Below, one piece after another: positions 2,812 through 23,258 of a stretch of 64,000 nt of DNA (the stretch's first letter is position 1; each line of letters begins with the position of its first letter). The stretch lies in NCBI GenBank assembly GCA_009103225.1, contig RHPI01002264.1:37633-101632 (forward strand). The letters run 5' to 3'. Both the position numbers and the translations under genes were made by a program. The notes under the pieces were generated by a model. It was not told where the DNA came from, ran no database searches, and saw only the letters and a program-made list of their open reading frames with translations. The stretch comes from Chlorokybus atmophyticus. Its lineage: Eukaryota > Plantae > Mesostigma and Chlorokybus algae.

Positions 2812-4007
2812 GTGGAAGAGAACTTGGTGCCCACCTCAAAGGGGGAAAGCTCGCAAAAAGAGCAATTATCCCGTGAGGAGGAATTTCCATCCATGGAGGA
2901 TATTTATAACCCGGATGATGCAGCTGATGAGTCTCATGCTGCTACAGATGTGGATTCCTTGGTGGAACCAGAGGGGCCACCACCACTATCATTCGTGCAG
3001 CTTAAAATCTCAATTCGCTTGACAAAACAGGAGTTGATGGACCACTTTCTTGGCACCTATGATGAGGATCCTCGTGAGGCGATTGTCTCGCTCAATAACA
3101 TCCTCTTTCATGTGGCGGAAAAGCTCACCACCATTATGGGGCAACATTGGGAGGGATGGATGGGTGAAGGCAAACATGTTCTAAACATGATCGAGCGCCT
3201 TCACCGCTCTGACAGTGGTCCACCTGTTCAGGCACTCGCTCGACCTGCCGAGTTTCTACCCAACAAGCAAGCGGCGATTTTTGACGAGCTCATGAACCTG
3301 AGACACTATGTCAACTCCCTTCACATTTCTCAGGAGGGGAAGTTGCGTGTAGTAAAGTTGATGATCTCAAACAATGCTCTGGAGGAGTGGTACCGCCGTA
3401 AGCAACGTGATACGAACCTCGGGCGGCAAGTGAATCAGATGTGCTCTTTGATGGAGCAGCGCTATGGTGGCGCAGATCCTGCACAGGTTGCTCGCAACCT
3501 GCTGCACAATCTGCGTCAGAATGGGCGTACGTCTAGCAGTATATCCAGGACTTCCAGTCTTTTGTTAGCAAGATCAATGCTGACAAACTACCCATTAGTG
3601 ACGCTAATCAGCTGGATATGTTCAGGCGTGGCTTGGACACAGATCACGTGCAGCATGTGGCCGTCAACCCCGCGAGTTTGCAAGAGTGGGCCTCGACGGA
3701 TTTGCCGATGCTGATGCACATGGTTGCTACTGTGGACAGTGTGAAGCGCTCTCACGCAAACATGCAAACCATAGCAAAAGAGGCAGCCCCGGCTTCAGCT
3801 GCAAAGCGCCAAGCGGCCACTAACAACAAAGTTTTTATAAAAAGGCGAAAACATCTTAGCCTGCTGGTCTCTACAACGCGGCCAAATCCACCATCACTTG
3901 CAACTTCTGCAAGAAGACAAATCATGGGGAGGCCAAGTGCTATGCACATCAGAAGGCCAAGCAGCAGAAGAACAAGAAATGGAAATTGTTCGTGGTTGGT
4001 AGCTTAG
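2812..4007 (+). pseudogene. Element A gag (frameshifted)
   Basis: Overlapping ORFs 2812-3714 and 3618-4007; CCHC knuckle CNFCKKTNHGEAKC near 3900-3950 in a third frame. Confidence 0.75.
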
Positions 4008-4399
4008 TCAAGCAGAACGACTTTAAAAATCTGTACTTCTTGATAAAGTTTCCTCTCTTTGTGATGTATCAGATGTATGGACTGATATGAGCACACCACC
4101 TGTGTTGACAAATGCAAACGGTTGTGTTTAATCAATGTTCCATTCTTTGAATTGGTAACTGCTGTTAAGCACTTACACGAGTTGCAACTACAACATGCTC
4201 AGCAGGCTGTCACTGCATGTGTAGTTATTCTTTGATATCATGGCCCGTAGTCGCGACGTGGTTGTTGAAAGAGGGAGAAGTAATTATGCAACTCTCTCGC
4301 AAAGATACAGGAACTTCACCGTTACAAGTGATCTTTATCAAGCCTGCTACCAATCACGGCACTCCGACATTAGCTACACTTGATGGTCACTCAGTGCCA

Positions 4400-5151
4400 C
4401 TTAAATGGAGATTTGAGAGTCAACTTATGTGCACACCATGTACAGCATTGATTGATGTTGGTGCAAACCATAACTTTGTTGAACATGCTTGGGTGAAACG
4501 TAATAACATACCTTTCACACCAGTCACGTCGTATGTACGTGCTGCTGGTTCCACCCTCAATGCAATTGGGGAGGTGAAGGGGCGTTTTGTTATTAACAGC
4601 CACTAGACTCGACCAGCTTTCATCGTAGTGGATATAAGTATCCCCGGGGTGGATGTTGTGTTGAGTGAACAGTGGCACACCAAAGCAGGTTTGCAATTGA
4701 ACTCTCGAGCAAATACGTGCACCCTTCGTAAAGGTAAACGTAAGGTGACGTTAACCGCACCTGTACTCGCACGTGTTGCTCGCGACAATGTTCCGCTCCT
4801 CTCTGCTATGCAACTGAAACGTTGCATGCGTAAACGTGAGGAAGTATATCTGATGCACTTACGACATGTAGAGACACTTGTTGAACATGCCGTAATTGAC
4901 TCCGTGGTGCAATTACTTATGGAACAATACGCAGATGTATTTCAGGATGAACTCCCGGAGTTGCCTCTTGAGAGAAATATACATCATACTATTCCGTTGG
5001 AAGAGGGGGCAAAGGTATCTTGGCGGCCTATCCATAGGCTAAGTCCATTAGAACACGCGAAAATGGAAAAACAGCTCAAAGAGTTATTGGACAAAGGTTT
5101 AATAACAAAGAGCATATTTCCTTTTGGTGCACCAATTTTGTTTGTGCCCAA
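4400..5151 (+). pseudogene. Element A protease and RT N-terminus, interrupted by element B
   Basis: ALIDVGANHNFV (degenerate DSG motif); YADVFQDELPELPLERNIHHTIPL...GAPILFVP. Removing B and one CCAA copy restores FVPKNNGKLRMCTDY in frame. Confidence 0.92.
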
Positions 5152-5391
5152 TGTCGTGCCTGCCATGGTCGAGGGCAACCTTGTCTCGGACAGGCTGCGG
5201 AGGAGTGCTAGTGCTGCACGCATGCTAGTGCCGTGCATTGCATTGGAGACACGCAAGCAAAAGACAACCCCCCAATCGTGGGCATAGGCTTGAAGATGAG
5301 CCTACGCGGTGTTTAGTGCAGTGGACGAGCCGATGCCGCTCGCCACCTTTGTGTACAGACTGTGTCGTAGTGCACACAGTCAACAAGCCAC
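5152..5391 (-). repeat. Element B repeat B2 (terminal, 240 bp)
   Basis: Copy of 6041-6278; 3 differences seen (a 2-bp indel and 2 substitutions). Confidence 0.95.
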
Positions 5392-6038
5392 TACGATAGG
5401 TAGTGCTGTGGACACAGTTCTTTGCATGAGTGGATAGAATGATACACTGTTAAGTGAGGTGAATGAGTGTGCAACACGTGGATACAACACCCTGACTACT
5501 GAAACAACACACCACCGTCAAGCTCACAGCAATGACAGGCACAACGCACAAGAGCATGCACCGTGTCTAACGCAGTAAGGGAATTCTTGGCAACCGGGGC
5601 GTGCTTCCAGTTCAAGTCGCTTCACAAGCTCTTTAGAAACAGAGTCTTTACTTCTTAGTACTCCTAGTACTCACAGTACTCACTTACAGTGTCACCAGCC
5701 AGTCTGGTGACGTGACTTCCTACTTATACATGTCAAATCATGACTGTGCAGTGCCACGCGGGCACTAGGCCAACGGTCACATCGAGGCCTCATGCTATTT
5801 CGGAAATCTCCTAAGACTCGATATAGCACATGTGTTCTTAACAGACTGTACAACTGATCAGCTACGCGCGGTCCCTACAGACAGGTCTATAAGGTAGCCC
5901 TAGCTACATGCTACATGAGTGGTACAGTAGCTAGCAGTAGGCTGGGGCTCGCGCGGTCTTCATGCTGGTAGCCCGGGCGTGGGGCTGGGTGTAGGCATGC
6001 TCGAGAAGGACTGGCATGCGAGGGTAGCTGGCATGACA
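5378..6038 (-). repeat. Element B repeat A2 (internal, 661 bp including a 14-bp overlap with B2)
   Basis: Copy of 20154-20814; 2 substitutions seen. Confidence 0.95.
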
Positions 6039-6040
6039 GC

Positions 6041-6278
6041 TGTCGTGCCTGCCATGGTCGAGGGCAACCTTGTCTCGGACAGGCTGCGGAGGAGTGCTAG
6101 TGCTGCACGCATGCTAGTGCCGTGCATTGCATTGGACACGCAAGCAAAAGACAACCCCACAATCGTGGGCATAGGCTTGAAGATGAGCCTACGCGGTGTT
6201 TAGTGCAGTGGACGAGCCGATGCCGCTCGCCACCTTTGTGTACAAACTGTGTCGTAGTGCACACAGTCAACAAGCCAC
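6041..6278 (-). repeat. Element B repeat B1 (internal, 238 bp)
   Basis: Copy of 5152-5391, separated from A2 by only GC (6039-6040). Confidence 0.95.
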
Positions 6279-6285
6279 CCCCCCT
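6278..6285 (-). promoter_or_regulatory. Element B polypurine tract
   Basis: AGGGGGGG on the minus strand, about 30 nt after the integrase stop and directly abutting TGGCTTG at the start of B1. Confidence 0.7.
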
Positions 6286-6315
6286 AGGGTAGCCCTCTAC
6301 TCCAGAACTCAGTTC

Positions 6316-7740
6316 CTACCGACAGTGTGGGGGACCGTTGATGCGGCAGTCATTGCACCAGTACTCCCACAAGGGTACTGCGTCCAGTGGAGGGTCAAGG
6401 CAGTAGCAGTGCATGCCTTGATTACAGCCGTCGCATAACATCATCAATGGGTCGTCGTCGGCGCTGCCACACTTCTCGCATCGGGTGCTGCGCAGCGGAC
6501 GCGGGTGCTGAATCTTGGTGAAGCCAGTAATGTAGGGGAGATGACAGGGTGCGCAGTTGACCATGTTGTCTTTCGTGCGCTCGCCCCGTTGTCCCAACAG
6601 GTCCAGTACCCCTGTGGGGTGCACCTTCAATACCTTGTAGACAGCACGCCCGACGGAGGTATCGAGGGTGTCGCGTGTAGACGCCATACAGTAGACGAAG
6701 TCTCCTGACTCGAAGCGGCGCTCCCGCTCTTTGTAGAAACCACTGCGCACACGCTCGTAACGCAGCGTGTCGCGGTGCTGCGCGATGCGCAGGTTGTTGA
6801 AGGCCGTGGGGACTGTGTGTTCGAACAGCGCACTGCGCACTGTCAGATCGTACAACATCTCGTCGGGGTTGTCGAGATTGTCCACCACTCTGTCGACCTC
6901 CTGCTGTGCGCGGAAAGGGAGCAATGGCTGCCTTCCGAACAATAGATAGTATGGGCTGTACTCTCGCAGGGCTGCTTGCTTGGACAGCCGGTAGCCCATT
7001 GCTACCCATTGGAGGTGATCATCCCAGGTATTCTTCTCGTAGGCGAGGATGTACTTGCGCAGTGCCTTCTTGATGGTCTGCACGGTACGCTCGGCGAGGC
7101 CGTCGGCCTGCGGGTGGTCGCGTGAGGTGCGACGGTGGTCGATGAAGCATCTGTCGATAAGCTTGTCGAAGGCTCCTCTGAACTCCGTACCCTGGTCGGT
7201 GATGACTTCAGCGCAGCTGCCGAAGCGTCCGAGTACATGGGAGAGGAAAGCCTGGGCTACTCCCTCACTGCTCTTGTCGGGCAGGGGCACCAGCTCCACC
7301 CACTTGGAGAAGTGCTCGATCATGACGAGGATGTAGCGGTTGCCTCGCGCTGAGGGCGCTAGGTCTCCGAGGATGTCCAGTCCCCAGCGGTAGAACAACC
7401 CGGAAATGGGAAGGGGATGCAAGGTGGCGTTGCGCGTGTTGAGGCTGGCGCGAACCATGTCACACTGCTGACAGTTGCTGACGAACTCCCGCACCTGTCT
7501 GTGCACCCCATACCACCAGTACTGGGTCCTGACCAAGCTGACCGTGCGCTTGGCACCGAAGTGCCCGAGCTCGGTGCGAAGGGAGGAGATGATGCCTTCA
7601 CGTGCAGCTGGTGTGGGGACCTCTTGATCTGCATCTTGTATCCGTTGATACAGCCTGTCGTTGGCCCAGCGATAACACTGAGTGCGTTGCCGGACGCGGT
7701 CCTTCTCGCGTGCGCTCATGCCTGCTGGAAGCTGTCCAGT
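6316..7740 (-). pseudogene. Element B integrase (zinc-binding region, rve DDE core) with C-terminal PHD finger
   Basis: LGHFG...CQQC; RWGLDILG, VITDQGTEF, PQADGLAERTVQTIK; PHD CEKCGSADDDPLMMLCDGCNQGMHCYCLDPPLDAVPLWEYWCNDC. Separated from RT-RH by one in-frame TAG at 7741-7743. Confidence 0.95.
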
Positions 7741-9645
7741 CTAAAGCAGTGCGAGGGATGGCTCGTTCAGCCAGATGTCTTGTCGTGTGTCGGTGGGTGC
7801 CAGTTCCTCATCATCCACCTCAGGGTCGGCAGCGATTGCTTCTTCTGATAAAGGATCGGTGGTGGTGATGGTGGGCTCGAGAGCGGGCATGTCCCCGTCT
7901 GCTGCTGCCTCAGCGATCTGAGTCCTGCGTCCTGAGCGTAGCGCAGCGACCGCGAACATGGTGGCCACACCTGAAGGTGCAGCTGTAGGACCCAACTCAT
8001 GTCGGGCGCCTGTGGCGTCGTTCGTGCTGAGGTGGGGGTTACGGCTGAGGCCATCCGCATCCTGGTTGGCAAGGCCTGCGCGGTGTTCCACCTCGAAGTC
8101 GTACTCCTGGAGCAGCAGCGCCCATTGCGCTAACTTTCCTGTCAAGTGCTGGTTGTTCATTAGCCACTTGAGGGGTTGATGGTCAGTGACCAGTTGGAAC
8201 TGCCATCCAAACAGGAAGGGTCGGAAGAAGGAGATGGCCCACGCCGCGGCGAGACACTCCCCTTCGTAGCTGCTGTAGTTGGCCTCAGCACTGTTGTTGC
8301 TGCGGCTGGCGTACGACACTACGCGCTCCTTCTTGTTGTTGTCGTGCTGTACGAGCACGGCCCCCATGCCGAGCTTGCTCCAGTCTGTGTGCAGGATGAA
8401 CGACCTGGTGTAGTCAGGGCGTTGCAGAATGGGAGCTGTGGTGAGGCGGAGCTTCAGCTCCTGAAAGGCCTCCTGTTGTGCCTCCTTCCACAAGAACTCG
8501 GTGTCCTTCTTCAGTAGTTCGTTGAGAGGCCTCGCGATCTTGGCAAAGTTCTTGACAAACCGGCGGTAATAGTTGGCAAGGCCGAGGAAGGCCCGCAGCC
8601 GCGTGAGGTCTGTGGGGGCAGGGATAGCCACCAGTGCCTCCACTTTGGCCTGCTGTACGTACACACCATGGGGCACAATCATGTGTCCTAGGTAGGGTAC
8701 CTTGTGGGTGAAGAAGGTGCACTTGTCAGGGTGCACCGTCATCCCGACTTCCTTCAGCCTCTGTAGCACCTCTTCGATGTGCTGGAGATGCTCCTCATTG
8801 CTGTGACTGAAGATGAGGATGTCGTCGATGTAGCAGCGTGCAAAGTCCAACCCCTTGAGGGCTTTGTCCATGACGCGCTGAAACTTGGCTGGAGCGTTCT
8901 TCAGCCCGAAGGGCATGACCTTCCACTGGTACAGCTGCCGGTTTCCCCATAAGGAAGTCTTGTGCTTGTCCTCCTCCTTGATGGCGATCTGGTTGTACCC
9001 TTGGCGCATATCCAGGATACTGAAGACCGTGCAGTCCCCTACATCGTCAAAGATGCCTTCTGCGGTAGGCATTAGATACCTGTCCTGCTTGGTCTTGTTG
9101 AGGGGGCGATAGTCGCCACACATGCGCCGGTCTGTCCAGTTGCCTGCTAAATCTTTCTTCAGGGGCATGATGGTTGCGGCCGTAAAGTCCGATGTGGACT
9201 CCTCGATCAGGCCCGCATCTAGCAGCGCCTTGCACCTCTGTTCCACCAAGTCTTCTTCTAGCTTGGAGAGGCGGTACTGTCTTAAAAACACCGGTTCGGT
9301 GTCCACTAGTTCAATGTCCATCTGGTATGCTGAGCAGATGCCCAGCTCCTTCACACTGAAGCTGAATTGGCTCCTCCACTTCTTGAGGAGAGCCTCGAGT
9401 TGCTCTCGAGTCTGGCCTGTGGCCGGCGGTCCAATGGTGTGGGACCACAAGGTAGCGTTGGCGACCACTGGAATGTCTTCCACAGTGACTGCTGCCTGCT
9501 CCTCCATGTGGGCGGTCTCGAGGGCGGTGTGTGCTGCTTTGGTCTCTGAAAAGCGAGCAATCCACCCCCCAGCCAGGTGTTCGAGCTCCTGGAAGGACAC
9601 ATGGCGGTCCTGGAGAGCAAAGCACATTTTCAAGTACCACACCAT
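7741..9645 (-). pseudogene. Element B reverse transcriptase and RNase H
   Basis: RRMCGDYRPLNK, VMPFGLKNAPAKFQR, CYIDDILIFS, FILHTDWSKLGMGAVL, EGECLAAAWA, LVTDHQPL. Confidence 0.97.
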
Positions 9646-9651
9646 GCTGTT

Positions 9652-10115
9652 CTAATCCATGGCGCGCCCTAACAGCTGATACTGTTGACTGGTTGTCAGC
9701 GTGGAGCCTGTGTTGCTGCCTGGAAAGAATCCCATAGCACGCTCGCGCTCACGAGCGTTGGGTTCTTCCAGCTGTCCAGTGTTGGAGTCTAACACCATGC
9801 CGTCGCCTCTATTGCGGAACGCGTATGAGCCTGGATAGGATACAAGTGTGGGTAGTGCGCGGTGCGGCTGACCAGGCTGGTTGCACTGGTAGAAGTGGTG
9901 GTGGTCAAGGCGTGTGACCGGTTGCGCCGTGCGTCCAGGGTCCAGGATGTTATCGATGACGAGATTTTGTGGCCGATTGCTGTATAGGTACTCTGCCAGA
10001 AACAGGTCCTCCACAATGGCCAGGTTGGTCCACTTGGCGCGGACGCGGTGTGCGCGAGATCCATGACGCGCGGCGTTGATTTTGAGAGGATGCCCCAGCA
10101 AGGAGCATACTTGTC
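9652..10115 (-). pseudogene. Element B C5 DNA methyltransferase, C-terminal half (motifs VIII-X)
   Basis: INAARHGSRAHRVRAKWTN and ERERAMGF...LLGRAMD. Joins the N-half in frame (KAYRQVCS) when the copia and one GATAG are removed. Confidence 0.88.
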
Positions 10116-10120
10116 GATAG

Positions 10121-10545
10121 TGTTGAAGGACTAGCATGCACATGTAGTTGAGGCAAGCATAGACACACAGAGACAGAGCTACCGCCACCAGAGCATACAC
10201 AAGTCACATCACATTCATCTATTACAAGTTGTCCGCTGGTTCTTATACCAGCCAGTTACACACACGTCTACGTTTGCAAGCACTGCGTAAGCTATACTCA
10301 GCCTTTTAACGCGCTCTAAGTTGCGTTGTCTTTCTTACAACTAGAGCTTTCCAACAAGCTCTTACACGCCTAATATGAGTAAGTATACGCGGAGATACGA
10401 AGCAGTTAGTAAGGCTCCAGTCTGGAGTCCGGAGTCTGGTCCGACGACGCCATCTTGCTAGTCCGGACCTAGTGCTCGTCCTTACGACCTTCTACTCCTG
10501 TGTGGAGGGTCGATGCTGATCGTATGTAGGAATGGACTCTCAACA
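10121..10545 (-). repeat. Element C 3' LTR
   Basis: Matches 14287-14711 with 5 substitutions and 2 single-base indels. Short purine tract GTGGGAG adjacent on the minus strand. Confidence 0.96.
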
Positions 10546-10574
10546 CTCCCACGCGAGCAGCTTGACCTCCAACG

Positions 10575-13500
10575 CTTGCTCTTGTAGTCAAACACAGATG
10601 CCAAGTCCGGCGCAACAAGTCTTGAACTTGAGCGGTGACAATGGCTTTGTCATGAAGTCCGCCAGCATGCCCTTAGTGTTGCAGTGGAACTGGAACTCCA
10701 CCTCCTTCCTTGTGACTCTGTCACGCACAAAGTGATGAATGGCATCAATGTGCTTTGTCCTGTCGAGGCGATAGGGTGCTTCAACAACTTGATGGCTCCT
10801 TGGTTGTCACAGTTGATGACGATGCACGCCATGGGGTGCTCCAAATCTGCCATGAGCTTGCGAAGCCAGAGTGCCTCCTTTACTGCTGCTGCCGCTGCCA
10901 TGTACTCAGCCTCTGATGTGGATGCTGCTGTTGTTGGCTGCAGCCTGCTATTCCAGCTCACCACGCCTCCGTTTAGCTTGAAGACGTAGCCTGTAGTAGA
11001 CCTCCTGCTGTTGAGGTCACCAGCAAAGTCCGAGTCGCAGTAGCCCTCCAACTCAGTGCTCCCGCTCCCAAACTTGATGCCAACTGTTGCGCTCCGAGCA
11101 ACATAGCGTAGTACTCCCTTTGCTGCTCTCCAGTGCTCCATGCTCGGTGCAGACATGTAGCGAGCAAGTACTCCCACAGCATGTGCAACATCGGGACGTG
11201 TGCACACTGCCAGATAGAGCATGCTGCCTACCAGCTCACCATATGGATACTGAGCCTTGTCGAGTACCTCCTCATCCTTTGCCTTGATGAGGGCAGTGCC
11301 AAGTGCCAACGGTGTGGTCTTGGTCTTCGCTTCAGTGAGCCCAAACTTGGTGACGAGTCTTCTCACCATCTGCTCCTGACTGATCTTGATTGTGCGAGCC
11401 GCCCTGTCGCGCTCAATCACCATGCCAAGGAACCACTTGGCCTCTCCAAGATCACGAACTGAGAATGCTTGCTGTAGAGCAAGTTTCGTCTCCTGCAGGT
11501 GGTGCACCTGCCTGGCGATGATGATGATATCATCAACATACACGAGCAGTCAGACCTTGTTGTCTGCATGGATGAAAAGTCCAGGGTCTGCAGAGGATGC
11601 GGTGAAGCCAAGTGCCTCCAGCTCCTTGGTGAGCTTGATGTGCCACATACGCAGTGCCTGTCGCAGCCCGTACAGTGCCTTGATCAGCTTGCACGCTGTG
11701 CCTCTCTCCCCTTCTTCATATCCAGGTGGTTGCTCGATGAAGATCTCCTCCTCCAGCTCTCCGTAGAGGAAGGCAGTCTTCACATCCAGGTGATGCAGCT
11801 CTAGGTCTTCAGCAGCAACCATAGCTAGCAGTGCACGGAAGGTGGTATGCTTACTTGCAGGTGCAAACACTTCGTTGAAGTCCACACCTTCCTGCTGCAA
11901 GAAGCCCTTTGCCACCAGTCTTGCCTTGTAGCGCTCAATGTTGCCCTGACCATCACGCTTCACCTTGAAGACCCATTTCACTGGAATGGTCTTCACTCCT
12001 TGCGGTAACTGCTCCAGTGACCAAGTGTTGTTGGCATGGAGTGACGCAATCTCCTCGTCCATAGCACGCTGCCATTGCTCCGCATCTGATGCTAACAATG
12101 CCTCCTCGTAGGTGCTTGGCTCCTCATTCTGCACACTGGCAACGTGTGCCTTGTGTAGGAAGTCAGGTGCCTTTCTCTCCCACTGGGTATCTCCGAGCTG
12201 CGTGCTCCTGCTGCAGGTGCGACTGCTTGTCTGCTACAGTGGAGTCCTGCTCACCCTTATCGTCGATGATGGCCTTGCCTGTAGCCTCCACTGTTTCAGG
12301 ATGCTCCGGCTGTGCTTCATCTTCAGGAAAGAAGCCTGCTTCTGGTTGTGATGATCCCTCGTGGAAAACCACCTCTCTGCTCATGATGATCTTCTGAGTG
12401 TCCTCGAGCAAGATCCTGTAAGCCTTGGAACCCGGATCATAGCCAACGAAGATGCCCTTCTTGCTGACCGGCTCCAGCTTGTGCCTGAGCTGTTTAGGCA
12501 CTAGTGCATATGCCGTGCATCCAAACACACGCATACCACTCACATCTGGTGTGGCTCCATAGAAGTGCTCCCACGGAGTCTTCTGCTCTGAGCTCACCGG
12601 AGACCTGTTGCGGATGTAGTTGGCAGTGAGTACCGCCTCCTTCCACAGACTGTCTTCCATCTTTGTGTCGTTGAGCATGGCTCGAACACGCTCCAAGAGT
12701 GTCCTGTTGAGGCGTTCAGCTGCTCCATTCTGCTGCGGGGTGTAGGGTGCCGTTGTCTCGTGGCGTATGCCCTTGCTGGCGAAGAACTCCTTCAACTCCT
12801 TGTTGATGTACTCCCCTCCTCGATCACTCCTCATTGCCTTCATCTTGTTGCCAGATTGCGTCTCCAGCAAGGCCACGACTGTGCGCACAGCTCCAGCAAC
12901 TTCTGACTTGAGCGTCAATGGAAAGATGATGGACAGCTTGCTGCAGTCGTCGAGAAATGTAGCAAAGTACCTGGCCCCTCCCTTCGCCACAATGCGCATA
13001 GGGCCACAGCCATCCATGTGCACAAGCTCGCAAGAATGCTGACTGCTAGAAGAGGATGATGGGAATGGCATAGCATGCTGCTTTGCAACCAGGCATGGTT
13101 CACAAAGTGCACCTGATGCATTCTTGAGTTCTTCGGTGCTGAGATGGATGCCCTTGACCAACTTCTCAGCGACAAGGCGAGTGAGGTTGACGTAGCTGAG
13201 ATGCCCGAACCTTCGATGCCACAATGTTGGCGACTCCTTGTCCTTCACTACCATGGCTTGAATGCCAATGTCCTTTTGGTGCTGCTCCACGTGGTAGAGC
13301 TCTCCCGGACCAGTGATTCCAACCATGTGCACGACCCCATCAAGGATGACTGTGCAGCCACCCTTTCGAAATAGGATCTCCGCGCCCAAGCGCTCCGCAA
13401 CCCTCACAGAGAATAGACTCGCAATAGCCTTAGGAACATGCATGACGTTGCGTAACAACACCTCGCGTAATGTGTTACCAACCTTGCACTGGAGTCGTAC

Positions 13501-14196
13501 GTTGCCAACTCCCTCAGCCACCAGTACTTCACCACCGAAGCCCGCCACCTTGATTGTGGACGTCAGCTTCCTGTAGCCCTCCATCACCTCCTTGTTTGGT
13601 GTGAGATGACGATCGCAGCCAGAGTCCACCACCCAGAAAGCTGTGCCCGCCCTCGAGCTGGATGCAGTGAAGGCGACATGTTTCTCCTTGTGTTGGTGCT
13701 CGTTGCCGCTGTTGCTGGTGCTTGCTCTAAGTTGCCCCTGTTGTTTCTTCCTACAGTCCTTCACAATGTGCCCCTTCCAACCACACCAGTCGCATGTGAG
13801 GTCTTTGTGACGAAGATTGCCTGGCTTGTTGCCCTTGTACTTCTCTTCATGGTTGCTCTTCTTTGCGTGCTTGCCGGTGTAGAAGGCGACGGCATCCGCT
13901 TGCTCGTCCTTCTTCACAACCCTCTGCTCCACGGTGAGCAGCTTCGGTAGCACATCGTCCAACGTCAACTCCGATGATGACGTCTCCAGCAGGGTTGCGA
14001 CGACCTCGTACTCTGCTGGTAGCCCTGCAACAATGGCCAGCACTACCTCCGTCTCCCCCATGTTGTGGCCGACGTTGATGAGGTCCGCCCACAGCTCTCT
14101 CGCGCGCGCAACATACTTTGTGATGGGTTCCGCTGCCTCCTTCCTGAGTGTGCTGAGGAAGTTGTCGAGCCTGCCTTTCTTGCAGTTGACACCCAA
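10575..14196 (-). pseudogene. Element C gag-pol (two frameshifts; gag N-terminus apparently shortened)
   Basis: CDWCGWKGHIVKDC knuckle, WVVDSGCDRH protease, WHRRFGH, ELVHMDGCGP...RSDRGGEY...PQQNGAAERLNR integrase, YKARLVAKG, YVDD, GYCDSDFAGD. Frame breaks near 12165 and 11548. Confidence 0.95.
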
Positions 14197-14273
14197 GGCT
14201 CTGCTACCAACAAGCTACCGTAGTGTAGAACTACTATGCACACAAGCTAGTCTCACACTCCTCAAGCGTAGTG

Positions 14274-14286
14274 TGGGCCCATAACC
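14274..14286 (-). promoter_or_regulatory. Element C PBS for an internal (half) tRNA-iMet primer
   Basis: GGTTATGGGCCCA directly after the 5' LTR, matching the PBS type of Drosophila copia and Volvox Osser. Confidence 0.85.
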
Positions 14287-14711
14287 TGTTGAAGGACTAG
14301 CATGCACATGTAGTTGAGGCAAGCATAGACACACAGAGACAGAGCTACCGCCACCAGAGCATACACAAGTCTCATCACATTTAGCTATTACAAGTTGTCC
14401 GCTGGTTCTTATACCAGCCAGTTACACACACGTCTACGTTTGCAAGCACTGCGTAAGCTATACTCAGCCTTTCAACGCGCTCTAAGTTGCGTTGTCTTTC
14501 TTACAACTAGAGCTTTCCAACAAGCTCTTACACGCCTAATATGAGTAAGTATACGCGGAGATACGAAGCAGTTAGTAAAGCTCCAGTCTGGAGTCCGGAG
14601 TCTGGTCCGACGACGCCATCTTGCTAAGTCCGGACCTAGTGCTCGTCCTTACGACCTTCTACTCCTGTGTGGAGGGTCGATGCTGATCGTATGTAGGAAT
14701 GACTCTCAACA
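14287..14711 (-). repeat. Element C 5' LTR
   Basis: Paired with 10121-10545. Confidence 0.96.
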
Positions 14712-14716
14712 GATAG

Positions 14717-15190
14717 GCCTTGGCGACGTGATGCCGCTTGTCATCCTCGGAGTGCACATTCTCGATGATGTACCCCAAGGGCCTAGCGATCTGACTGGTC
14801 TGCAGAAGTTTGATGACTCTCATTAGCTCCCAGAACAGCTGTGAGCGAGGATCAGAGAGCCCGTGGCCTCTGCCTGCCTTGGAGTGCCCTTGACACTCCC
14901 ATCCTGCTATCAGCAGGTCAATGTTGCCGACTGCCTGCAGGTGATCCTTGGTAATCCAGCGGATGTCCTGCGGTAGAGCCTTCTTGCTCCCTTGCAGTGC
15001 CGACAGTGGTAGCCGTTGCGGGTAGCGCTGGTGCAGCTGTCGTAAATGATGGCTCAGAGCCTCCTGTGCATGAGGGTCAGGTCCACAGTAGAGGTACTTG
15101 ATGACTGTTGTTCCTGTGTTGAGGACAGCCGCAAGCCCACTGCCTATGCCTCCGAACAGCTCCAGCACGGTGATGCCTTGTTGTCGGCGG
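14717..15190 (-). pseudogene. Element B C5 DNA methyltransferase, N-terminal half (motifs I-VI)
   Basis: VLELFGGIGSG (motif I), IDLLIAGWECQGHS (motif IV, catalytic Cys), YIIENV (motif VI). Confidence 0.9.
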
Positions 15191-15600
15191 AACATGTGGA
15201 ACTCTACAACTCCCGTAGCTATGTGGTACTGCTCCTGCACTGTAGCCTGGTCCTTATAGACAGGGAAGTGTGCAGTGAGCTGAGGCCTGGTCAGTAGCAT
15301 GTGTGCTGCTACCTGTGCACTCCAGCGGCGCTCGGACGGCTCCTGAAAGGCCACTTCTTTGGTGACAGTCTCCTGAGACTCATCGTAAGGTGTAGGAGAG
15401 TCCTCTTCAGCGTTCAGGCTCGGGCTCGAGCTTGTTGTAGCTGTCCTCGGCTGCGTTCGGGCACGAGGCACACATGAGCTTTTTGTAGAACTGTAGGTGG
15501 CTGATGCGGCCGATCTTCGTTGCGAGCTGGCCTTGGCCACCAGCTCAAGAGGTAGGAATCCCTGCTCCTCTCCATCTTCCTCATCCCAATGCGGTTGAAA

Positions 15601-16416
15601 TCATGCCTGCTCAGTCCAGCAGTCCATCCCCATGCCGACAGAGAAGTTGCAGTCCTGTCCCAGCAGTAGGTCAAAGGACCCGGCATTGGTGACCACACAC
15701 CTTTGTACAATCTCGGTGCTGTGGGAAGGGTTTAGTCCTGTGAGGCGGATGCTCACAGCCTGCTTGGTAAGGCCGAGCACCTTGTCGCGGTTGCCGGTTG
15801 CGGTGTTCAACTGGTAAGGACAGGGAAGCAGCTCAGCGCTAGTGACGCCGAGATCTCGTGCGAGGTAGCGCCCAATGATGACAGGCTGTGCTCCAGTGTC
15901 CAGCATCACGCGTTTGGGTGCCTGACCATTGACGGTCACGTGCTTGCCTTGGTTGGCGATCATGGCTGCATTGGCGTTGATGCGCAGCCTCTTGAAGCGA
16001 CGGAACCTCTTGCGTGGAGAGACTGTTGCTTCACTCTCATCCGCGGGGCCTGACCGTAGGGCAGCCATTGCTCCTTTGCCTGATGGATCTTGTGGGCCTC
16101 CTTGTCCTCGGCTGTGTCTAAACCGTCCTTGTCGCGGTTGCTGGTACACGCGTGGTGGCCTAGGCACTGGAGGTGCTGCTGCGACCTGTCCAAGTGGAGG
16201 TGCAGGAGGGTTGACCCTCTGTGCAGCTGTTGTCATGCCAGGAGGAGTGGCCAGCGGCTGTGGCGGGAACCCTGGAGGACCTGGTGTTTGCGGGACTGCC
16301 TCTCGTGCAGCCTGCTCCTCTGCATAGATCCACCGCACAGCATGGGCTGTCTCTCTGACTAGTGTACCTTCCCATGTAGCCGTCGCATTGTTGTCCACGT
16401 CTATATAGCGATGGTT
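15601..16416 (-). pseudogene. Element B aspartic protease region
   Basis: KRVMLDTGAQPVIIG and FDLLLGQD. Bounded by in-frame TAG (16417) and TGA (15601). Confidence 0.88.
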
Positions 16417-17640
16417 CTAAGGCATGGGCTGCAGGTACACTGCTCGTAGGAGCCGCGCTCTCATGTCGTGGGTGATGGTGGGCACCCTGAGGATCCCTGC
16501 CATGTAAGCATCCCATCTGCCGCTGACCACTCCCACTTCCAGCACTGTTATTGCTCGTGCACGTACAGTGAGGCGGGTCTCTGGCTGTTGGACATGCTGC
16601 TCGTAAGCAGCGGCGATGCGCCTGCGCTGACGTCCTGCCTCCACTCCTGGCAAACTCAGTATAGCCTCCAGAGCTCCCTCCAGAGTGTCAGTGGCGGCGG
16701 AAGCCACTTCATCATAGGCTTGCCGTATGGAGCGAAGGAATGCGTCCACCCACGCTATTCTGGCGCCGAAAGCGAACAACGGGACTGCGGGATGGTTGGT
16801 GACCAGCCACGTCACTAACCGTGCACGTGCCGCGTTGCCATTGTCTCGCATCCCAAGCATCTGCCGAAGTCCAATGCCTTCTTGCCGATGCAGCATGGTT
16901 GCTTGTCGCAACAGAGCAGTGCGTAGTTGTTGCTCTCCAACCAGTCCTGCTCCATCTCTTTGTGTACACCCTTGTGGTGTAAGGTAGCCCCTCCCTGGCT
17001 CCCTTTGGTCCTCAGGTAGATCCTCCACCAGCGCAGGCAGCAACGGGGCGATCACCCCCCTGGTTTGTTGAGCCAACGCCCTCGCTTGGTCAGAGTTGGT
17101 CTCGACGAAGAGCGGAGTGGTGCTGGAGGATGGACCAGCAGTTGGTGACTGAGGTATTGGTGCACGTGTAGCTTCAAGAGCTTGTTTACGTGCAGCAATG
17201 GCGGCAGCTTGATCCTGTCGCCAATGATATGCTTGTTCCAGTGCGTGGTAGCGCTGATGAAGGCGAGCGGTTGTAGGAGGTCCGAGTGCTTCATCAGTGC
17301 CCAAAGGCAGGTCGGCTGCGTCGGCGATGCGCTGCTGGACGGTGTCTCGGCGGTCCCGATACGTGTCCAGTGGGCTGGGTTCAAAGGTGGTGGTTGGCAT
17401 GCGTGCAGGCTGGCGCGGGGCGGTCTGCATGTTGTTGTGCAACGCCCAGAACAGCTGCAGGGCCAACTCCAACACTACAGGTGGGCTGTAGCTGATCAAA
17501 AACACCCTGTCACGCATCGGAGGTGCAGTGCCAGCAAGGATCTCATCTTCCAACTGGTGTTGAGTGAGTGCTGGAAGGGTGTGAACCTCTGGTAGCGGGA
17601 AGACGCGATCATCGCGGGCGACACGCGTGGTGCGCTCCCC
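16417..17640 (-). pseudogene. Element B uncharacterised ~400-aa segment between Gag and protease
   Basis: Open frame 16417-17694, in frame with the protease; no motif recognised. Confidence 0.7.
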
Positions 17641-19952
17641 CCCCGACCGAAGGCGATGGTAGTGGGGTCTGCTCCGCGCAGGATGGTCTCCCATGCTCGC
17701 TCAGCTTGGCGACCAGTTGGGACAGCCTGAGTGACGTCAAGAGCGGGCAGAGTGGCTGCGCGCGTCGCTGCAGCGACAGCGGGCTCGACGATGGCAATTG
17801 TGGCAGTTGCGACGGTACCGGTTGGTGGTGCGAGAGTTGTCTCAACGCCTACGGACAGAGGCACTGCTGCAGTGGGAAGTGCACCGCCCACTGGTGCAGA
17901 TTCGGTAGAGATGGCGGCTGCTGCCAGTGTGCTCACCAGCGTCGGCGTCAGGGTGCCCATCGGTGTACCAGGTTGTGGTGCAACTGGAGTGGGTGCTGAC
18001 GTTGGTGGAGTCGACGTTGTAGCCGGTGTGGCTGTTGCTGCGGAGGCAGCACCACTGGTGGCTTCGGAGGAGGTGCCTGCTGATGTTGTTGCAGCTTCCC
18101 CTCGTGCTCGTCGTGATGGTTGCACGCGGGACGGAGTGTTCCTGTCTCTCTCGCGTTTTGCAGCCATCAGCGCCCATCGGGCAGCGTAGCAGGCGCGGTA
18201 GTCCTGCTCCTTGTCTTCCTCCAAGCGTGCCATACGCGCCATGAGGGCTGCCATATGGTCATCAGCTGGTGGGTTGGCTGAAGCCTTGGCGGCAACAGCA
18301 GCAGCGCGCGGACGTGTCTCTGGTCCCTTACGCTGAGGAGGTCTGTTCTTCCCCCTGTAGCCTTGCTCTTCTTTGCGAACACTGGCATTGTTGTTGTTGT
18401 TACTGCCACCAGCGTTGTTGCTGTTGTGGGCTCCAGTGTTGTTGCTATTGTAGCCACTGAAGTGGTTGCCAGTGTGGCCTCCAGTGTTGTTGCTGTTGTA
18501 GCCACCGGAGTAGTTGTGGTTGTAGCTGTTGGCGGGCCTCAACTCTGGGAACTTGAGCCAGCAGACTGACTCCAAATGACCAGTCTTGTGACAGTGGTCG
18601 CAACCTAACGTTAAGTATTCTTCGGTGCACTCCTTTTGGTAGTGCCCATGCCGTCCACAGCGATGACACAGCACAGGGGCAGCAAGTGCAGCATGAGCTG
18701 ACCGTTTCCCTTTGTCGCGTGCTGGTGGAGCGTCCCGACCGCGGTCGCGGCGAGGAGGCTCAGTCGTCGTGCTGACTACAGGCCGTGCGGCGCTGCGGTT
18801 GGTGTCCAACACTACCTTCTCATACACCAAGCGCTTGTGGATGGCTTGTGCAGTCTCGAAGGCTTCTTTAAGGGTGTAGCCAAGGGGCCTGCTGTAGTTC
18901 AGAGTCAGGCGTGTCGACTCGCTCAGAGCAGCATCCAACTCATTGACGTATATCACTGCAGCAGCCTCCTCACTGACAATCTTGTAGTCGGTGTCCTTCA
19001 GCAGACCTTCCAGTCTGGAGTACAAGCGGAGGGGATCCTCATTGGGCTTGCGTCGGAAGCGTCTCAACTCCTCAACCTTGCTGGTGGTCTGAGGAGGGAA
19101 GGTGCGGCGCAGGGCAGCGTACAGGTCCTTGAGTGGAGAATCAAAGATGGCAGCTCCTACGGAGATGGCTGGTGCGCGCAGTGCTACTGACCTGAGGGTG
19201 AAAGTACTGCCTCCTGCACGAGAGCCAGGTGTTGCTGGAGGTAAAGGAGTACCCCACTCTGCGGCTGCCGCTTGCTGTGCAGCTCTTTGTTCCTCAATGA
19301 TGACGGCAGAACGGTCAAGGATGCGGACTCGACGTGTGGCCTCCTTGGACTCAACTTCTGCAGAGGTCAAGTTGACAAGTACCAACTCCGGTTCCTCCTC
19401 CTCTGCCTGCTTGAGAGCTGCAGCTATGGACAAGCCTGTTACTGCAACTGAAGTGGCAGGTGGAACGACACCTGATGGACGGTGCAGAGATGCAGATGCT
19501 ATGGTGCTGGCAAGCTCGCCATAGCCGTCTACTCAATGCAGTTCAGCAACGGACTTCCAGACATCGTGTGCTTCATGATCAAGATACTGAGCAGCAATGT
19601 GGAACGAGATCTCATCTGTCCAAACTTTGTTCTTCAGAGCTTGCTGCCGCATCTTGGAGTGGAACTTGATGATGAACTCATCCAGCGAGGTGGTACCGGC
19701 ACGTCCGGAGAAGCGCAGGGATGTGGTTGAACTGGAAGACTCCATCTCGTTGTCGTCGCTGTCCGATGATAGTGCAGAAGCTTGATGACGAGGAGTAGAG
19801 TGGAGCGGGGTGAAGCTGGAGATGGAGCGCGAGGCTCTGCTGCTGCGGTCGATGCTCCCGTCACTGGTCCGCTCGTAAGTGAGGTCGGTGGTTGGGCTCC
19901 AACTGCTGAGGTCACCCTCGTCTATTGGGGAGAACGGGGTGGGCCTGCTCAT
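17641..19952 (-). pseudogene. Element B gag
   Basis: ATG at 19952. RFSG...LDEFIIKF and EELRRFRRKPNEDP gag-like segments; two knuckles CHRCGRHGHYQKEC and CDHCHKTGHLESVC. One in-frame TGA at 19533-19535. Confidence 0.85.
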
Positions 19953-20141
19953 ACAGCTGGACCAGAGGTGAAAGGGTAGAGTGCTTGTGCTCTACCGTCT
20001 ATCCTGATGCTGTTACCACCCAACACACTAGTGCTTGTGCGCACTATGTGATGACAATGGTAACGAATGCCCAGCGATCTATCCCTGGGTGCAGACTGCA
20101 CTATCTGATGCAGATTGCAACACACTCACTTGTGCAAAGAG

Positions 20142-20156
20142 GGTGACACTGTAAGT
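20142..20156 (-). promoter_or_regulatory. Element B putative self-priming PBS
   Basis: ACTTACAGTGTCACC on the minus strand, directly after repeat A1, is the exact reverse complement of the minus-strand sequence at 20458-20472. Confidence 0.7.
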
Positions 20157-20814
20157 CAACAAGCCACTACGATAGGTAGTGCTGTGGACACAGTTCTTTG
20201 CATGAGTGGATAGAATGATACACTGTTAAGTGAGGTGAATGAGTGTGCAACACGTGGATACAACACCCTGACTACTGAAACAACACACCACCGTCAAGCT
20301 CACAGCAATGACAGGCACAACGCACAAGAGCATGCACCGTGTCTAACGCAGTAAGGGAATTCTTGGCAACCGGGGCGTGCTTCCAGTTCAAGTCGCTTCA
20401 CAAGCTCTTTAGAAACAGAGTCTTTACTTCTTAGTACTCCTAGTACTCACAGTACTCACTTACAGTGTCACCAGCCAGTCTGGTGACGTGACTTCCTACT
20501 TATACATGTCAAATCATGACTGTGCAGTGCCACGCGGGCACTAGGCCAACGGTCACATCGAGGCCTCATGCTATTTCGGAAATCTCCTAAGACTCGATAT
20601 AGCACATGTGTTCTTAACAGACTGTACAACCGATCAGCTACGCGCGGTCCCTACAGACAAGTCTATAAGGTAGCCCTAGCTACATGCTACATGAGTGGTA
20701 CAGTAGCTAGCAGTAGGCTGGGGCTCGCGCGGTCTTCATGCTGGTAGCCCGGGCGTGGGGCTGGGTGTAGGCATGCTCGAGAAGGACTGGCATGCGAGGG
20801 TAGCTGGCATGACA
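20154..20814 (-). repeat. Element B repeat A1 (5' terminal)
   Basis: Copy of 5378-6038; lacks any B segment other than the 14-bp overlap. Confidence 0.95.
20499..20504 (-). promoter_or_regulatory. Candidate TATA box of element B
   Basis: TATAAG on the minus strand about 30 nt upstream of the putative self-primer at 20472. Confidence 0.5.
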
Positions 20815-23124
20815 CCAAAAACAATGGCAAGCTACGCATGTGTACTGATTACCATGCGTTCAACAAGGTAACTGTGACAAACAGATACCCTTTGCCTCGG
20901 ATTGATGATTGGTTTAATAAGCTGTCAGGTGCAGCAGTGTTCAGCACAATGGATTTGACCAGTGGTTATCATCAAATCAACATCCACCAATCAGATACAC
21001 AAAAACTGCATTTCGCACCCCACTAGGACAATTTGAGTATAAAGTGTTACCATTTGGGTTAACAAATGCACCAGCTACATTTAGGCAGCAATGAACGCGG
21101 TATTTGCTGATGAATTGTACAAGTTTGTACTGGTATATCTTGATGACATTATTGGGTTCAGCAAAACCCGGGAGGAACACCACAAGCATGTACAATTGGT
21201 TCTAGCTAAGTTACGCGAACACAATTTCTATGCCAACCTGTCCAAATGCAACTTTGCAAAGGATGAACTACCCTTTTTAGGGCATATGATTGTTTAAGAG
21301 GGATTGAAACCGGACTCTCAAAAGGTGTGTGCGGTGAAGGATTGGCCACCACCCAAGGATGTACGTCAGTTACGTGCTTTCTTGGGGCTAGCTAATTATT
21401 TCCGCAAGTTCATGCGAGCATATTCGAGCATGGCAAATCCTTTAACATCTTTACTGAGAAAGAATGTTAAATATGTGTGGACGGAGGCACACGAGGTTGC
21501 TTTTACACGCATTAAAGATGCATTAACACAAGCCCTTGTGTTTGCCTTCCCCGACCACATCAAGCCTTTTGTGGTGATCAGTAATGCTTCCACCATTGGG
21601 TGTGGGGCAATCCTTCTACAGGATGATAGACCATGTGCATATGAAAGCAGAAAGTTCATTCCTGCTGAACGTAATTACACAACCATTGAGCAGGAATTGC
21701 TCGGGGTGGTGCACGCGCTGCGCACATGGCGTTGCTACTTGGAAGGTGTGGAGTTTTCAGTGATTACTGATCACAACCCGCTCACATTCTTTTATTCGCA
21801 ACAGAACCTGTCGAGGCGGCAAGTTAGGTGGAATGAATTCATTTCTCGTTTCACTTTCACTTGGCAATACCGTCCGGGTTGCACCAATGTGGCGGATCCA
21901 CTAAGTCGTAGCCCTGCTCTTTGGGCACTTACGCGCTCTCGAAGTACGCGTAGTGTGCAACAGCCTAAAGATCCTGTCTTAAAGGAAGTGTCCACAAGTT
22001 ATAACTGAAATGATTGGTTTAGCAGTCAAACCAACTTGCAACAGCTTACTGCTGTTAGCAATCTGTGGTATAAAGGGGAGCAATTGGCAATGCCCAACTC
22101 GGGCGACTTGCATAAGCAATGCTTACATTCAATGCATGACCCGCCGTATGCTAGACATTTGGGGAAACACAAAACACTCAAAGCTGCGCAAAAGTTATAC
22201 TAGTGGCTGTCAATGTCAACTGATGTGGATCAACATGTTTGCACATGTGACGTATGTCAACGTAATAAGCCACTACGAACAAAACAAGCGGGATTGCTTA
22301 AACCATTGCTAATTCCAAAACAAAAGTGGGATAGTGTCAGTATGGATTTCATTACCGACCTACCTGAAACAGTAGCCAAATACACTGCTATTGTGGTTTT
22401 TTGTCGACCGTTTGACTAAAATGGTGCATTTTGCCTCGTGTTGCACAACTGTGAGTGCATGGGACTTAGCACATTTATTTGTGTCCACGGTTTTGTAAGT
22501 TCACGGTGTATCGCGTGAGTTTATCACAGATCATGATCCTCGGTTTGTCTCCAAGTTTTGGAGAGAAGTCTATAAATTGTTGGGGGTAAAACAAAGCATG
22601 TCGACTGCTTTCCACTCGCAAACGGACGGACAAACTGAGCGAGCAAATCAAACACCGGAAGCAATGCTTCGCCACTATGTGTCTCCTAACCATGCTGATT
22701 GGGAAAGGTATTTGCCAATGGCAGAGTTTGCTGTGAACAACGCGTGGCAGGAAAGTGTAAAGAAAACCCCATTTTTCTTGAACTATGGGATTCGCCCGAA
22801 CACACCAGCGTCATTGCGTGTACCTCGCACTGCCCTGACTGTACCAGCGGCAAAGGAATTTGCCACTGATATGCAAGAAAATTCGGCTCGAGCCAAGCTA
22901 TGTCTGTCAGAAGCACAAGACAAGCAAAAAGCTTATGCTGATACACATCAAAGAATGGCCACTTTCGATGTCGGCGATAAAGTTTTGCTTAACGCGAAAG
23001 AACTCGCTATTTGATGAAATGGAAAGGGTATGGCCCAGAACATAACAGCTGGGAGCCCGACAGGCATCTTACGCACTGCCGCGAGTTGCTTCGAGCTTAT
23101 TATGATTCACGTCCTGTCCCGTAA
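20815..23124 (+). pseudogene. Element A RT remainder, RNase H, integrase and chromodomain (several stops and frameshifts)
   Basis: [64 protein letters not shown]; chromodomain YLMKWKGYGPEHNSWEP at about 23008-23060. Confidence 0.93.
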
Positions 23125-23258
23125 ACTGTGGGCTTGGTTTTATGACAGACTGGCAGTGCCATTTCATTACCACCCTGTCATTTCATGCTATCTCACTTGT
23201 TATAATTACTCGAAATCAAGCCTGATCAACTTGAGTTCAACGAGGACGTTGAAAACTT

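Follow-up and report, generated by a model that had tools for sequence, protein, structure and literature searches.

Split direct repeats, i.e., the order A1-genes-B1-A2-B2 in place of two identical long terminal repeats (LTRs), have been regarded as a diagnostic feature of tyrosine-recombinase retrotransposons and as indicating integration via circles. PAT-like, TOC-type and Ngaro elements, some of which also carry a methyltransferase, have this order, and they are thought to integrate from circles and without target duplications. Here, we report that the element at positions 5152-20814 of a 64,000-nucleotide stretch of the Chlorokybus atmophyticus genome (contig RHPI01002264.1; the whole stretch is called the window, and all coordinates are its own) is a genuine Ty3/Gypsy retrotransposon of this early-branching streptophyte alga, the ends of which are organized as A...B-A-B and not as two identical LTRs. 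In contrast to PAT-like, TOC-type and Ngaro elements, which have a tyrosine recombinase and no DDE integrase, it encodes an rve-type DDE integrase, has TG...CA ends and is flanked by a 4-bp target-site duplication (TSD).

Our literature search for split repeats combined with Gypsy found a single description, the figure legend in which KnitGypsy-Dnmt3 of Klebsormidium nitens is given 'DIRS-like' repeats and Gypsy domains (Fig. 4c legend; de Mendoza et al. 2018, Nat Commun 9:1341, PMC5890265), the DIRS-like arrangement being A-coding region-B-A-B according to the Fig. 1 legend of the same paper; a 2026 preprint cites 'Gypsy-DNMT3' and leaves the structure undiscussed. The impression of the initial annotation, that no DDE family of such build had been described, is not borne out in view of that legend, and the sense that the layout lacks a mechanistic explanation still holds: PMC5890265 gives no TSDs, priming sites, GC palindrome or mechanism for KnitGypsy-Dnmt3. 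The paper also describes SymbioDIRS-Dnmt3 of Symbiodinium, which resembles the Chlorokybus element in its A-coding-B-A-B repeats and in a Dnmt3-like domain within pol but has a tyrosine recombinase and a DIRS-type reverse transcriptase (RT), and which acquired its DNA methyltransferase (DNMT) domain independently; the methyltransferase of DIRS elements is Dam-like, whereas that of the Chlorokybus element is of the cytosine-5 (C5) Dnmt3 type (PMC5890265).

The copy at 5152-20814 is a full-length but dead Gypsy-DNMT3-PHD element of the same kind as KnitGypsy-Dnmt3. The present analysis adds the occurrence of this kind in Chlorokybus, a boundary signature common to the whole family, TSDs of 4 bp, a self-priming site, and the conserved offset between the ends set by reverse transcription and those used by the integrase. 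The reading we favor, to which we would give a probability of about 75%, is that the split repeats are intrinsic to the family and that the provirus is a circular permutation of the cDNA, produced through a B-GC-A repeat and the opening of its GC junction.

Terminal repeats and coding content of the element

Comparison of the window with itself by BLAST gave two direct repeats, A (5378-6038 and 20154-20814, 661 bp, 99.7% identical, 2 transitions) and B (5152-5391 and 6041-6278, 240/238 bp, 98.3% identical, 2 substitutions and a 2-bp indel), in the order A1-ORFs-B1-A2-B2 that had been read initially, ORFs being open reading frames. The repeat coordinates given then also stand, apart from the first base of B1, since 6278 is the last G of the polypurine run and B1 proper is 6041-6277. 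Read on the minus strand, the order is ...TTGG flank, A1, coding region, AGGGGGGG, B1, GC, A2, B2, TTGG flank. Both copies of A begin TGTCATGCC, A1 directly adjoining the flank ...TTGG; both copies of B end GGCACGACA, the end of B2 directly adjoining the flank TTGG; and A2 passes into B2 via 13-14 shared nt, TGGCTTGTTGACT. The outer ends of the element are TG...CA, with an inverted repeat matching at 8 of 9 positions, and the integrase half-sites (…CA and TG…) adjoin each other internally at the GC at 6040-6039.

5148..5151, no strand: TSD copy 1, CCAA on the plus strand (boundary reading, host RT frame)
5152..5391, minus strand: B2, 3' terminal repeat, ending ...GGCACGACA at the 3' end of the element (self-BLAST)
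5378..6038, minus strand: A2, beginning TGTCATGCC, its last 13-14 nt overlapping the start of B2 (self-BLAST)
6039..6040, minus strand: GC between B1 and A2, centre of the palindrome GACAG/CTGTC
6041..6277, minus strand: B1, internal copy of B, starting right after the polypurine run (self-BLAST)
6278..6285, minus strand: polypurine tract (PPT) AGGGGGGG, predicted plus-strand primer
20154..20814, minus strand: A1, sole repeat at the 5' end, with no B after it (self-BLAST)
20815..20818, no strand: TSD copy 2, CCAA (boundary reading, host RT frame)

The element interrupts the RT gene of an older, plus-strand Gypsy element, and this host gene gives a further reading of the boundaries. The host translation runs ...GAPILFVP plus two leftover bases to 5151 and picks up as NNGKLRMCTDYHAFNKVT... 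from 20820; for the frame ...GAPILFVP-K-NNGKLRMCTDY... to close via the K codon, both the 15,663-bp element and one CCAA have to be taken out. The CCAA duplication is therefore no chance match, and the exact closure of the frame indicates that the whole A1...B2 unit came as one insertion with a 4-bp duplication. The TG...CA ends and the clean CCAA TSD of the initial annotation are confirmed.

The minus strand encodes, in order, a short ORF, gag, a 425-aa ORF, protease, DNMT, RT-RNase H, and an integrase with a C-terminal PHD finger.

17496..19433, minus strand: gag ORF with CCHC zinc knuckles and a 24-bp tandem repeat
16417..17694, minus strand: 425-aa ORF with no family match, in the pol frame, upstream of the protease
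15601..16398, minus strand: aspartic protease ORF (Pfam)
14717..15540, minus strand: N-terminal part of the DNMT domain (Pfam DNA_methylase; solved relatives DNMT3A/3B/3C and M.HaeIII)
9652..10120, minus strand: C-terminal part of the Dnmt3-like C5 methyltransferase, the frame continuing past a nested copia element (in-frame TAG at 9654-9652)
7741..9645, minus strand: RT-RNase H ORF of Ty3/Gypsy type (Pfam; Ty3 the closest solved relative)
6316..7719, minus strand: integrase ORF with H2C2 zinc domain, rve core (D,D35E) and C-terminal PHD finger (Pfam)

The Pfam domains follow one another on this strand as Asp_protease_2, RVT_1, RT_RNaseH, Integrase_H2C2 and rve, which is the Ty3/Gypsy pol order, and Ty3 is the closest solved relative of the RT-RNase H (E 4e-74), so that the Ty3/Gypsy assignment made at first is confirmed. 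Two features usual in such elements are replaced by others: the two identical LTRs of Ty3/Gypsy, by A only at the 5' end and B-GC-A-B at the 3' end; and the C-terminal integrase chromodomain of chromoviruses, by a PHD finger (Pfam PF00628). The integrase belongs to the DDE class as had been proposed, the residues D115, D175 and E210 of its rve core (D,D35E) being invariant in the alignment. No Phage_integrase-type match, i.e., no tyrosine recombinase, was found among ORFs of at least 120 aa on both strands (E<=1 for otherwise unmatched ORFs), in agreement with the earlier impression. With the DIRS order, then, the element shares the split repeats but neither the tyrosine recombinase nor the integration free of TSDs; with the Gypsy-DNMT3 elements it shares the DNMT domain in the polyprotein, the A-coding-B-A-B order and the kinship to K. 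nitens.

The Dnmt3-like C5 methyltransferase domain sits between protease and RT. It matches Pfam DNA_methylase at E 1e-11, and its PDB matches are mostly DNMT3A/3B/3C, the single best being M.HaeIII. A nested copia element was inserted within the domain and divides it in two; coordinate arithmetic shows the pol frame to be unbroken across it, i.e., 15540 to 14712 is 829 nt, or 276 codons plus 1 base, and the next codon boundary past copia, 10113, is in frame with the ORF at 9652-10200. The RT-RNase H ORF is likewise in frame with the integrase ORF, a TAG at 7743-7741 lying between them. The PHD finger, at about 6346-6480, takes the place that the chromodomain has at the integrase C-terminus of chromoviruses. 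Its closest solved relatives are the PHD fingers of BAZ2A, UHRF1 and ATXR5, which read the unmodified histone H3 tail. This relationship hints at a possible targeting of the element to H3K4-unmethylated chromatin rich in transposable elements (TEs); the copy itself sits in another TE. The initial annotation had reported neither the DNMT domain nor the PHD finger, and likewise had left out the nested copia element (10121-14711) and the type of the priming site. As side observations, the 24-bp tandem repeat in gag (18381-18526) comprises five to six units and encodes an Asn/Gly/Ser-rich, NSNNTGG-like stretch downstream of the zinc knuckles, and the best matches of the proteins of the element show 46-63% identity.

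The same layout in related loci

Relatives of the RT-RNase H-integrase-PHD protein were collected from a protein search, exact-protein look-ups and a scan of JGI metagenome contigs, in which an alignment of 20 relatives served as the query and gave 80 loci, mostly from moss-associated samples; all loci were subjected to self-comparison and cross-annotation. The order POL-PPT(G-run)-B-2nt-A-B was found in 22 independent loci, among them Marchantia polymorpha (L001) and ENA and JGI metagenome loci, and in one more, L052, in which B2 is partly deleted. These lineages, with otherwise unrelated A and B, share one signature, G-run/B...ACGACA/GC/TGTCATG...A/B. In all relatives (C)TAGGGGGG or TCTGGGGGGGG stands directly 5' of B1, B ends (C)ACGACA, and A begins TGTCATG; the spacer between B and A is always 2 nt, namely GC, a transition derivative of it in old copies (AC, GT, AT), or AA once. 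What the lineages have conserved is the end of B together with the start of A; neither the end of A nor the start of B is conserved.

The K. nitens contig L085, which lies outside the 22 because it ends before any B2, reads GGTTAGGGGGGG/B...GGCACGACA-GC-TGTCAGG. K. nitens contigs thus carry the G-run/B...GGCACGACA-GC-TGTCA... junction, with gag-DNMT followed by RT-integrase and a PHD finger at the integrase C-terminus, and KnitGypsy-Dnmt3 shares with the Chlorokybus element the Ty3/Gypsy pol, the Dnmt3-like C5 methyltransferase upstream of RT and the A-coding-B-A-B repeats. The top integrase match is also from this alga (KFL_015960010, E 1e-174, 49-51% identity). What separates the two is the genus and an integrase amino-acid identity of about 50%, besides 13 nt that A, at its end, and B, at its start, have in common only in the window lineage. 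From the shared domain set and junction signature, we assign the window element, as a new member from another genus, to a kind of element that had been reported but not analyzed.

Perfect 4-bp TSDs flank 9 copies of full layout: CCAA in the window, GGTC in L002, TCTC in L008, AAGG in L050, TTTA in L026, TGAC in L034, ATGT in L025, GGTA in L059 and CCAC in L052; three old full-layout copies have imperfect ones. A shorter form, A-genes-B without GC-A2-B2, was found in 13 independent copies (L010, L011, L015, L017, L018, L019, L035, L036, L045, L051, L066, L078 and L079) and probably in L004, and 4 of the 13 have perfect 4-bp TSDs (CCAA in L018, TGTT in L066, TGTG in L010, ATTA in L015). Altogether, 12 relatives (8 full-layout and 4 A-genes-B), or 13 insertions with the window, are flanked by perfect 4-bp TSDs. 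These duplications bear on whether the element might belong to the tyrosine-recombinase retrotransposons (DIRS, PAT or Ngaro), its recombinase gene having been lost or overlooked, as split direct repeats like those of PAT and Ngaro would suggest: site-specific recombination makes no such duplications, no ORF on either strand matched a recombinase even at E<=1, the rve DDE integrase has a conserved triad, and the RT-RNase H is closest to Ty3. We regard this origin as exceedingly improbable.

Of about 18 loci that reach the 5' end, none has B following A1 or A-B preceding A1, and paired A+B LTRs at both ends were found in none of the loci examined. The proposal that the layout is intrinsic rather than damage is therefore sustained by the same order and boundary motifs in 22 independent loci, and neither of the findings that the initial annotation had named as fatal to it, paired A+B LTRs elsewhere or a misassembly, appeared in the related loci. 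A one-off rearrangement or misassembly of a conventional element with two (A+B) LTRs would fit the single copy of the exact family in the window, but it is very unlikely in view of the PPT/B, ACGACA-GC-TGTCATG and A/B boundaries being repeated in the same order in 22 loci from unrelated assemblies, of the 4-bp TSDs that many of them have of their own, of A+B being found at the 5' end of no locus, and of the K. nitens layout already published. Another simple reading takes A alone as the true LTR and B as an unrelated piece, either a segment of the 3' untranslated region together with a duplicated target piece, or a separate small element; A does stand at both ends and is 99.7% identical between them. 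However, in the 9 full-layout copies the TSD flanks the end of B2 rather than that of A2, it is B, not A, whose end bears the CA and repeats the start of A in inverted form, and what is conserved across lineages is the end of B and the start of A rather than the end of A or the start of B. There is, in our opinion, very little chance that A alone is the LTR.

Three further loci have unreadable termini: Calypogeia L088, riddled with another repeat, Haematococcus L086 and Closterium L087. Integrase-PHD proteins with 43-45% identity to that of the window element occur in chlorophytes as well (P0144 and P0207 of Haematococcus lacustris, P0200 of Chromochloris zofingiensis), by which the PHD-integrase Gypsy clade may predate streptophytes.

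Priming sites, integration sites and the order of the repeats

The polypurine tract adjoins B1 exactly and a priming site adjoins A1, as the initial annotation had it; the priming site proved to be of the self-priming type.

5728-5723, minus strand: TATAAG box in A2
5696-5682, minus strand: primer segment GGTGACACTGTAAGT, 15 nt, in A2
20504-20499, minus strand: TATAAG box in A1
20472-20458, minus strand: predicted transcript start and primer segment in A1
20142..20156, minus strand: self-priming primer-binding site (PBS) ACTTACAGTGTCACC, the last 3 nt of A1 and the next 12 nt (perfect complement of GGTGACACTGTAAGT in A)

GGTGACACTGTAAGT begins 32 nt downstream of TATAAG in A. In L002, AATTCTAGAAAAACT has its complement in AGTTTTTCTAGAATT, 32 nt downstream of TATAAAAG, and in L050 the 17-nt ACTCAAAGAACTATGTT pairs with AACATAGTTCTTTGAGT, i.e., three lineages with unrelated sequences show perfect complementarity over 15, 15 and 17 nt in the same geometry, with the pairing beginning 2-3 nt before the end of A and the partner about 30 nt past a TATA-like box. 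Older copies retain shorter remnants of it. No complementary run longer than 10 nt arose in a shuffle control (300 per case), and the minimum-energy fold of the predicted RNA from R (the repeated region) through U5 (the unique 5' region) to the PBS contains an end-to-end helix (z = -3.0 and -5.2). Judged by sequence, this is the self-priming arrangement of the Tf1/sushi and plant Tcn1 type, the transcript start being predicted; Tf1/sushi elements are self-priming, and the plant Tcn1 clade is predicted to be so (Neumann et al. 2019, PMC6317226). In priming arrangement the elements agree, with no tRNA-type PBS and a site next to U5 that complements the 5' end of their own transcript, but the Tf1/sushi/Tcn1 elements have paired LTRs and a chromodomain, where the Chlorokybus family shows split repeats and a PHD finger and also encodes a DNMT. 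The shared 13-14 nt TGGCTTGTTGACT, beginning TGG, was also considered as a tRNA-type PBS and rejected: it is unlike a tRNA 3' end, relatives are without such an overlap, and the perfect self-priming complementarity was found instead.

On the self-priming arrangement, the transcript is predicted to start within A and U5 to end where A ends; the polypurine tract sets the beginning of U3 (the unique 3' region) where B begins. By standard LTR reverse transcription, the repeat built by RT would then be B-GC-A. In this scheme the genomic RNA would be R-U5(A1)-PBS-genes-PPT-B1-GC-U3'(A2)-R, U3 would comprise B, GC and the 5' part of A, and R-U5 the remainder of A; the two strand transfers would make the B-GC-A repeat and the linear cDNA would be (B-GC-A)-PBS-genes-PPT-(B-GC-A). 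This predicted cDNA begins where B begins and ends where A ends; these termini are not conserved, have no inverted repeats and are without TG/CA. The conserved inverted repeats with CA and TG adjoin at the GC spacer (GACAG/CTGTC), and integrated copies start and stop exactly there. The provirus, A-PBS-genes-PPT-B-GC-A-B, matches the content of the predicted cDNA exactly, with the left B-GC shifted to the right end. This suggests that the integrase may cut the internal B/A junction and not the ends of the DNA copy.

Such a permutation would arise if the ends of the cDNA were joined, the end of A to the start of B giving the A2/B2 junction, and the product were reopened at the GC junction of the left repeat; integration would proceed from the end-joined form, a two-repeat circle or its equivalent. 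Alternatively, the integrase would cut the left GC junction and insert both cut ends, and the host would join the two free cDNA termini. In the window, L002 and L050 groups, the A2/B2 junction unites the predicted U5 end, extended by 0-3 nt of the PBS, with the base that immediately follows the PPT. The 13 nt immediately downstream of the PPT are, in the window lineage, the same as the last 10 nt of U5 and 3 nt of the PBS; both cDNA termini would thus carry the same 13 nt, which could guide their joining, and A2/B2 holds a single copy of the 13 nt, as homology-guided joining would leave. In its strongest form, the proposal would have the DDE integrase act on the internal palindromic junction …ACGACA-GC-TGTCATG… and never on cDNA termini, each cycle would need end-joining, and the provirus would always be the same circular permutation of the cDNA; we put this form forward tentatively, at slightly worse than even odds.

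Inverted end-sites also abut in retroviral two-LTR circle junctions, which are by-products, and in the circle junctions of bacterial insertion sequences of the IS3 and IS30 families. The element is like both in having inverted end-sites across a 2-bp spacer (the palindrome ...ACGACA GC TGTCATG...). Unlike the junction of two-LTR circles, its junction is permanent, conserved in every integrated copy and in the predicted RNA, and its integrated ends match this junction and not the predicted cDNA termini.

A different route to the same order would be regeneration of the DIRS/PAT-like kind without canonical LTR synthesis, with an RNA running from inside A1 to the end of B2, by which B1-GC-A2 and A2/B2 would be inherited through RNA and B1-GC-A2 would have no other role than as a template to restore the missing 5' part of A, as has been proposed for the internal complementary region of DIRS-1. 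The repeat order is the same as in PAT, Ngaro and TOC-type elements, the A2/B2 variants track the phylogeny of the copies as inheritance would have it, and the poly(A) site of the genomic RNA assumed above is a predicted one. Against this route, the G-rich PPT adjoins B1 and the self-priming site adjoins A1 exactly in every lineage, which it leaves unexplained; PPT and PBS are canonical landmarks of plus- and minus-strand priming and already regenerate U3; and a minus strand primed at the PBS never copies B2. The sole polyadenylated transcript contig obtained speaks neither for it nor against it. This contig of a close relative (L089, Logan SRR32070976) ends in 15 A about 120 nt past the pol stop codon, and a poly(A) at the end of B was considered for it and dismissed, as alignment to L005 and L006 puts its end at an A-run upstream of the position of the PPT in related loci, so that it is uninformative on the 3' end of the genomic RNA; L089 may be a short polyadenylated mRNA isoform unfit as genomic RNA, or an assembly break at the A-run. 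Taken together, we think regeneration of the DIRS/PAT-like kind unlikely.

Several points weigh against the permuted provirus that we favor. The integration intermediate is something we infer from the repeats, and both the cDNA termini and the end-joined form are predictions. A two-repeat circle has two identical GC junctions, and opening at the other one, to A-B-GC-A-genes-B, was seen in 0 of about 18 loci, so either the choice of junction is directional or that form decays fast; a kinetic explanation, that only the left junction would be double-stranded during a long plus-strand extension, is speculation. The length variation of A2/B2 in the L002 group (AAT, AT, AA or A between U5 and B) looked at first like variable, de novo end-joining but is no evidence for it: the variation agrees with the phylogeny and is linked to lineages or due to duplicate loci, both 'AT' loci being one locus found in two samples. 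The A-genes-B copies could be deletions between B1 and B2, or they could be a second, dead-on-arrival class of integration product, the possible routes being a B1xB2 deletion, cuts at both junctions with direct integration, or a single cut of a one-repeat circular intermediate of reverse transcription. Terminal branch lengths of full and A-genes-B copies, compared to learn if the short form is the older one, have equal medians (0.042 vs 0.043) and little power to tell these apart, and the two forms interleave on the tree. Finally, the Chlorokybus family is represented by one copy.

Decay, nesting and implications for the family

The pol of the copy is broken by four in-frame stops on the minus strand (first bases 16419, 15603, 9654 and 7743), all of which fall in linkers between domains; three are TAG in the context T-TAG-A. 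Together with the nested copia, the stops mean that the copy is dead, despite A1 and A2 differing by only two transitions. Possible causes of the stops are C-to-T decay at CAG/CGA, mobilization of a defective copy in trans, or read-through.

10121..14711, minus strand: nested Ty1/copia element, separate from the Gypsy element (425-bp LTRs, 98.4% identical)
1407..23797, plus strand: outer, older, conventional Ty3/Gypsy element (paired LTRs at 1407-1929 and 23271-23797, 90% identical)

The copia element has TGTTG...CAACA ends and a 5-bp TSD, GATAG, at 10116-10120 and 14712-14716. The outer Gypsy element has TG...CA ends, a 5-bp TSD (GCTGA, vs 4 bp in the split-repeat family), a PPT adjoining the 3' LTR and a tRNA-iMet-like PBS, TGGTATCCAGGAGC; it is conventional, so paired LTRs are the norm in the Chlorokybus genome too. 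With copia inside the split-repeat Gypsy and the latter inside the outer Gypsy, retrotransposons are nested here at three levels. Towards its right end the window holds pieces of host genes, i.e., a papain-type protease exon (27293-28246), the I-region of an XPG/FEN-type nuclease (33643-34668) and COG2 (61765-63375), as well as two pairs of diverged local duplications with 72-83% identity (28125-32034 and 56549-61123). The COG2 ORF matches the JGI Chlat1 model Chrsp112S01611 at 100% identity, and 'Chrsp' identifiers are those of Chlorokybus, in agreement with the origin of the window.

The family joins the split-repeat architecture to a DDE integrase of working type, TG...CA ends and target duplications, and it is old and widespread, being found in Chlorokybus, Klebsormidium, liverworts and moss-associated metagenome contigs. 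For annotation, programs that search for LTR pairs would miss split-repeat elements and their A-genes-B derivatives or set their bounds wrongly. The priming sites and the integrase sites disagree, in a conserved manner, on where the element ends, and a scheme in which the cDNA ends are the integrase substrates therefore cannot fully explain it; this conserved offset points to a junction-based integration step. The regeneration and integration of split repeats, open questions for DIRS, PAT and Ngaro, become testable in Klebsormidium and Marchantia, both of which are laboratory organisms, and the good in vitro assays available for integrases of the retroviral type would aid such studies. If the strongest form of the proposal is true, the family would be a eukaryotic LTR retrotransposon with an obligatory junction-based integration, like that of IS3/IS30 circle junctions, and the split repeats of PAT, Ngaro and TOC elements would follow from the position of the recombination site within the repeat and not from the use of a tyrosine recombinase.

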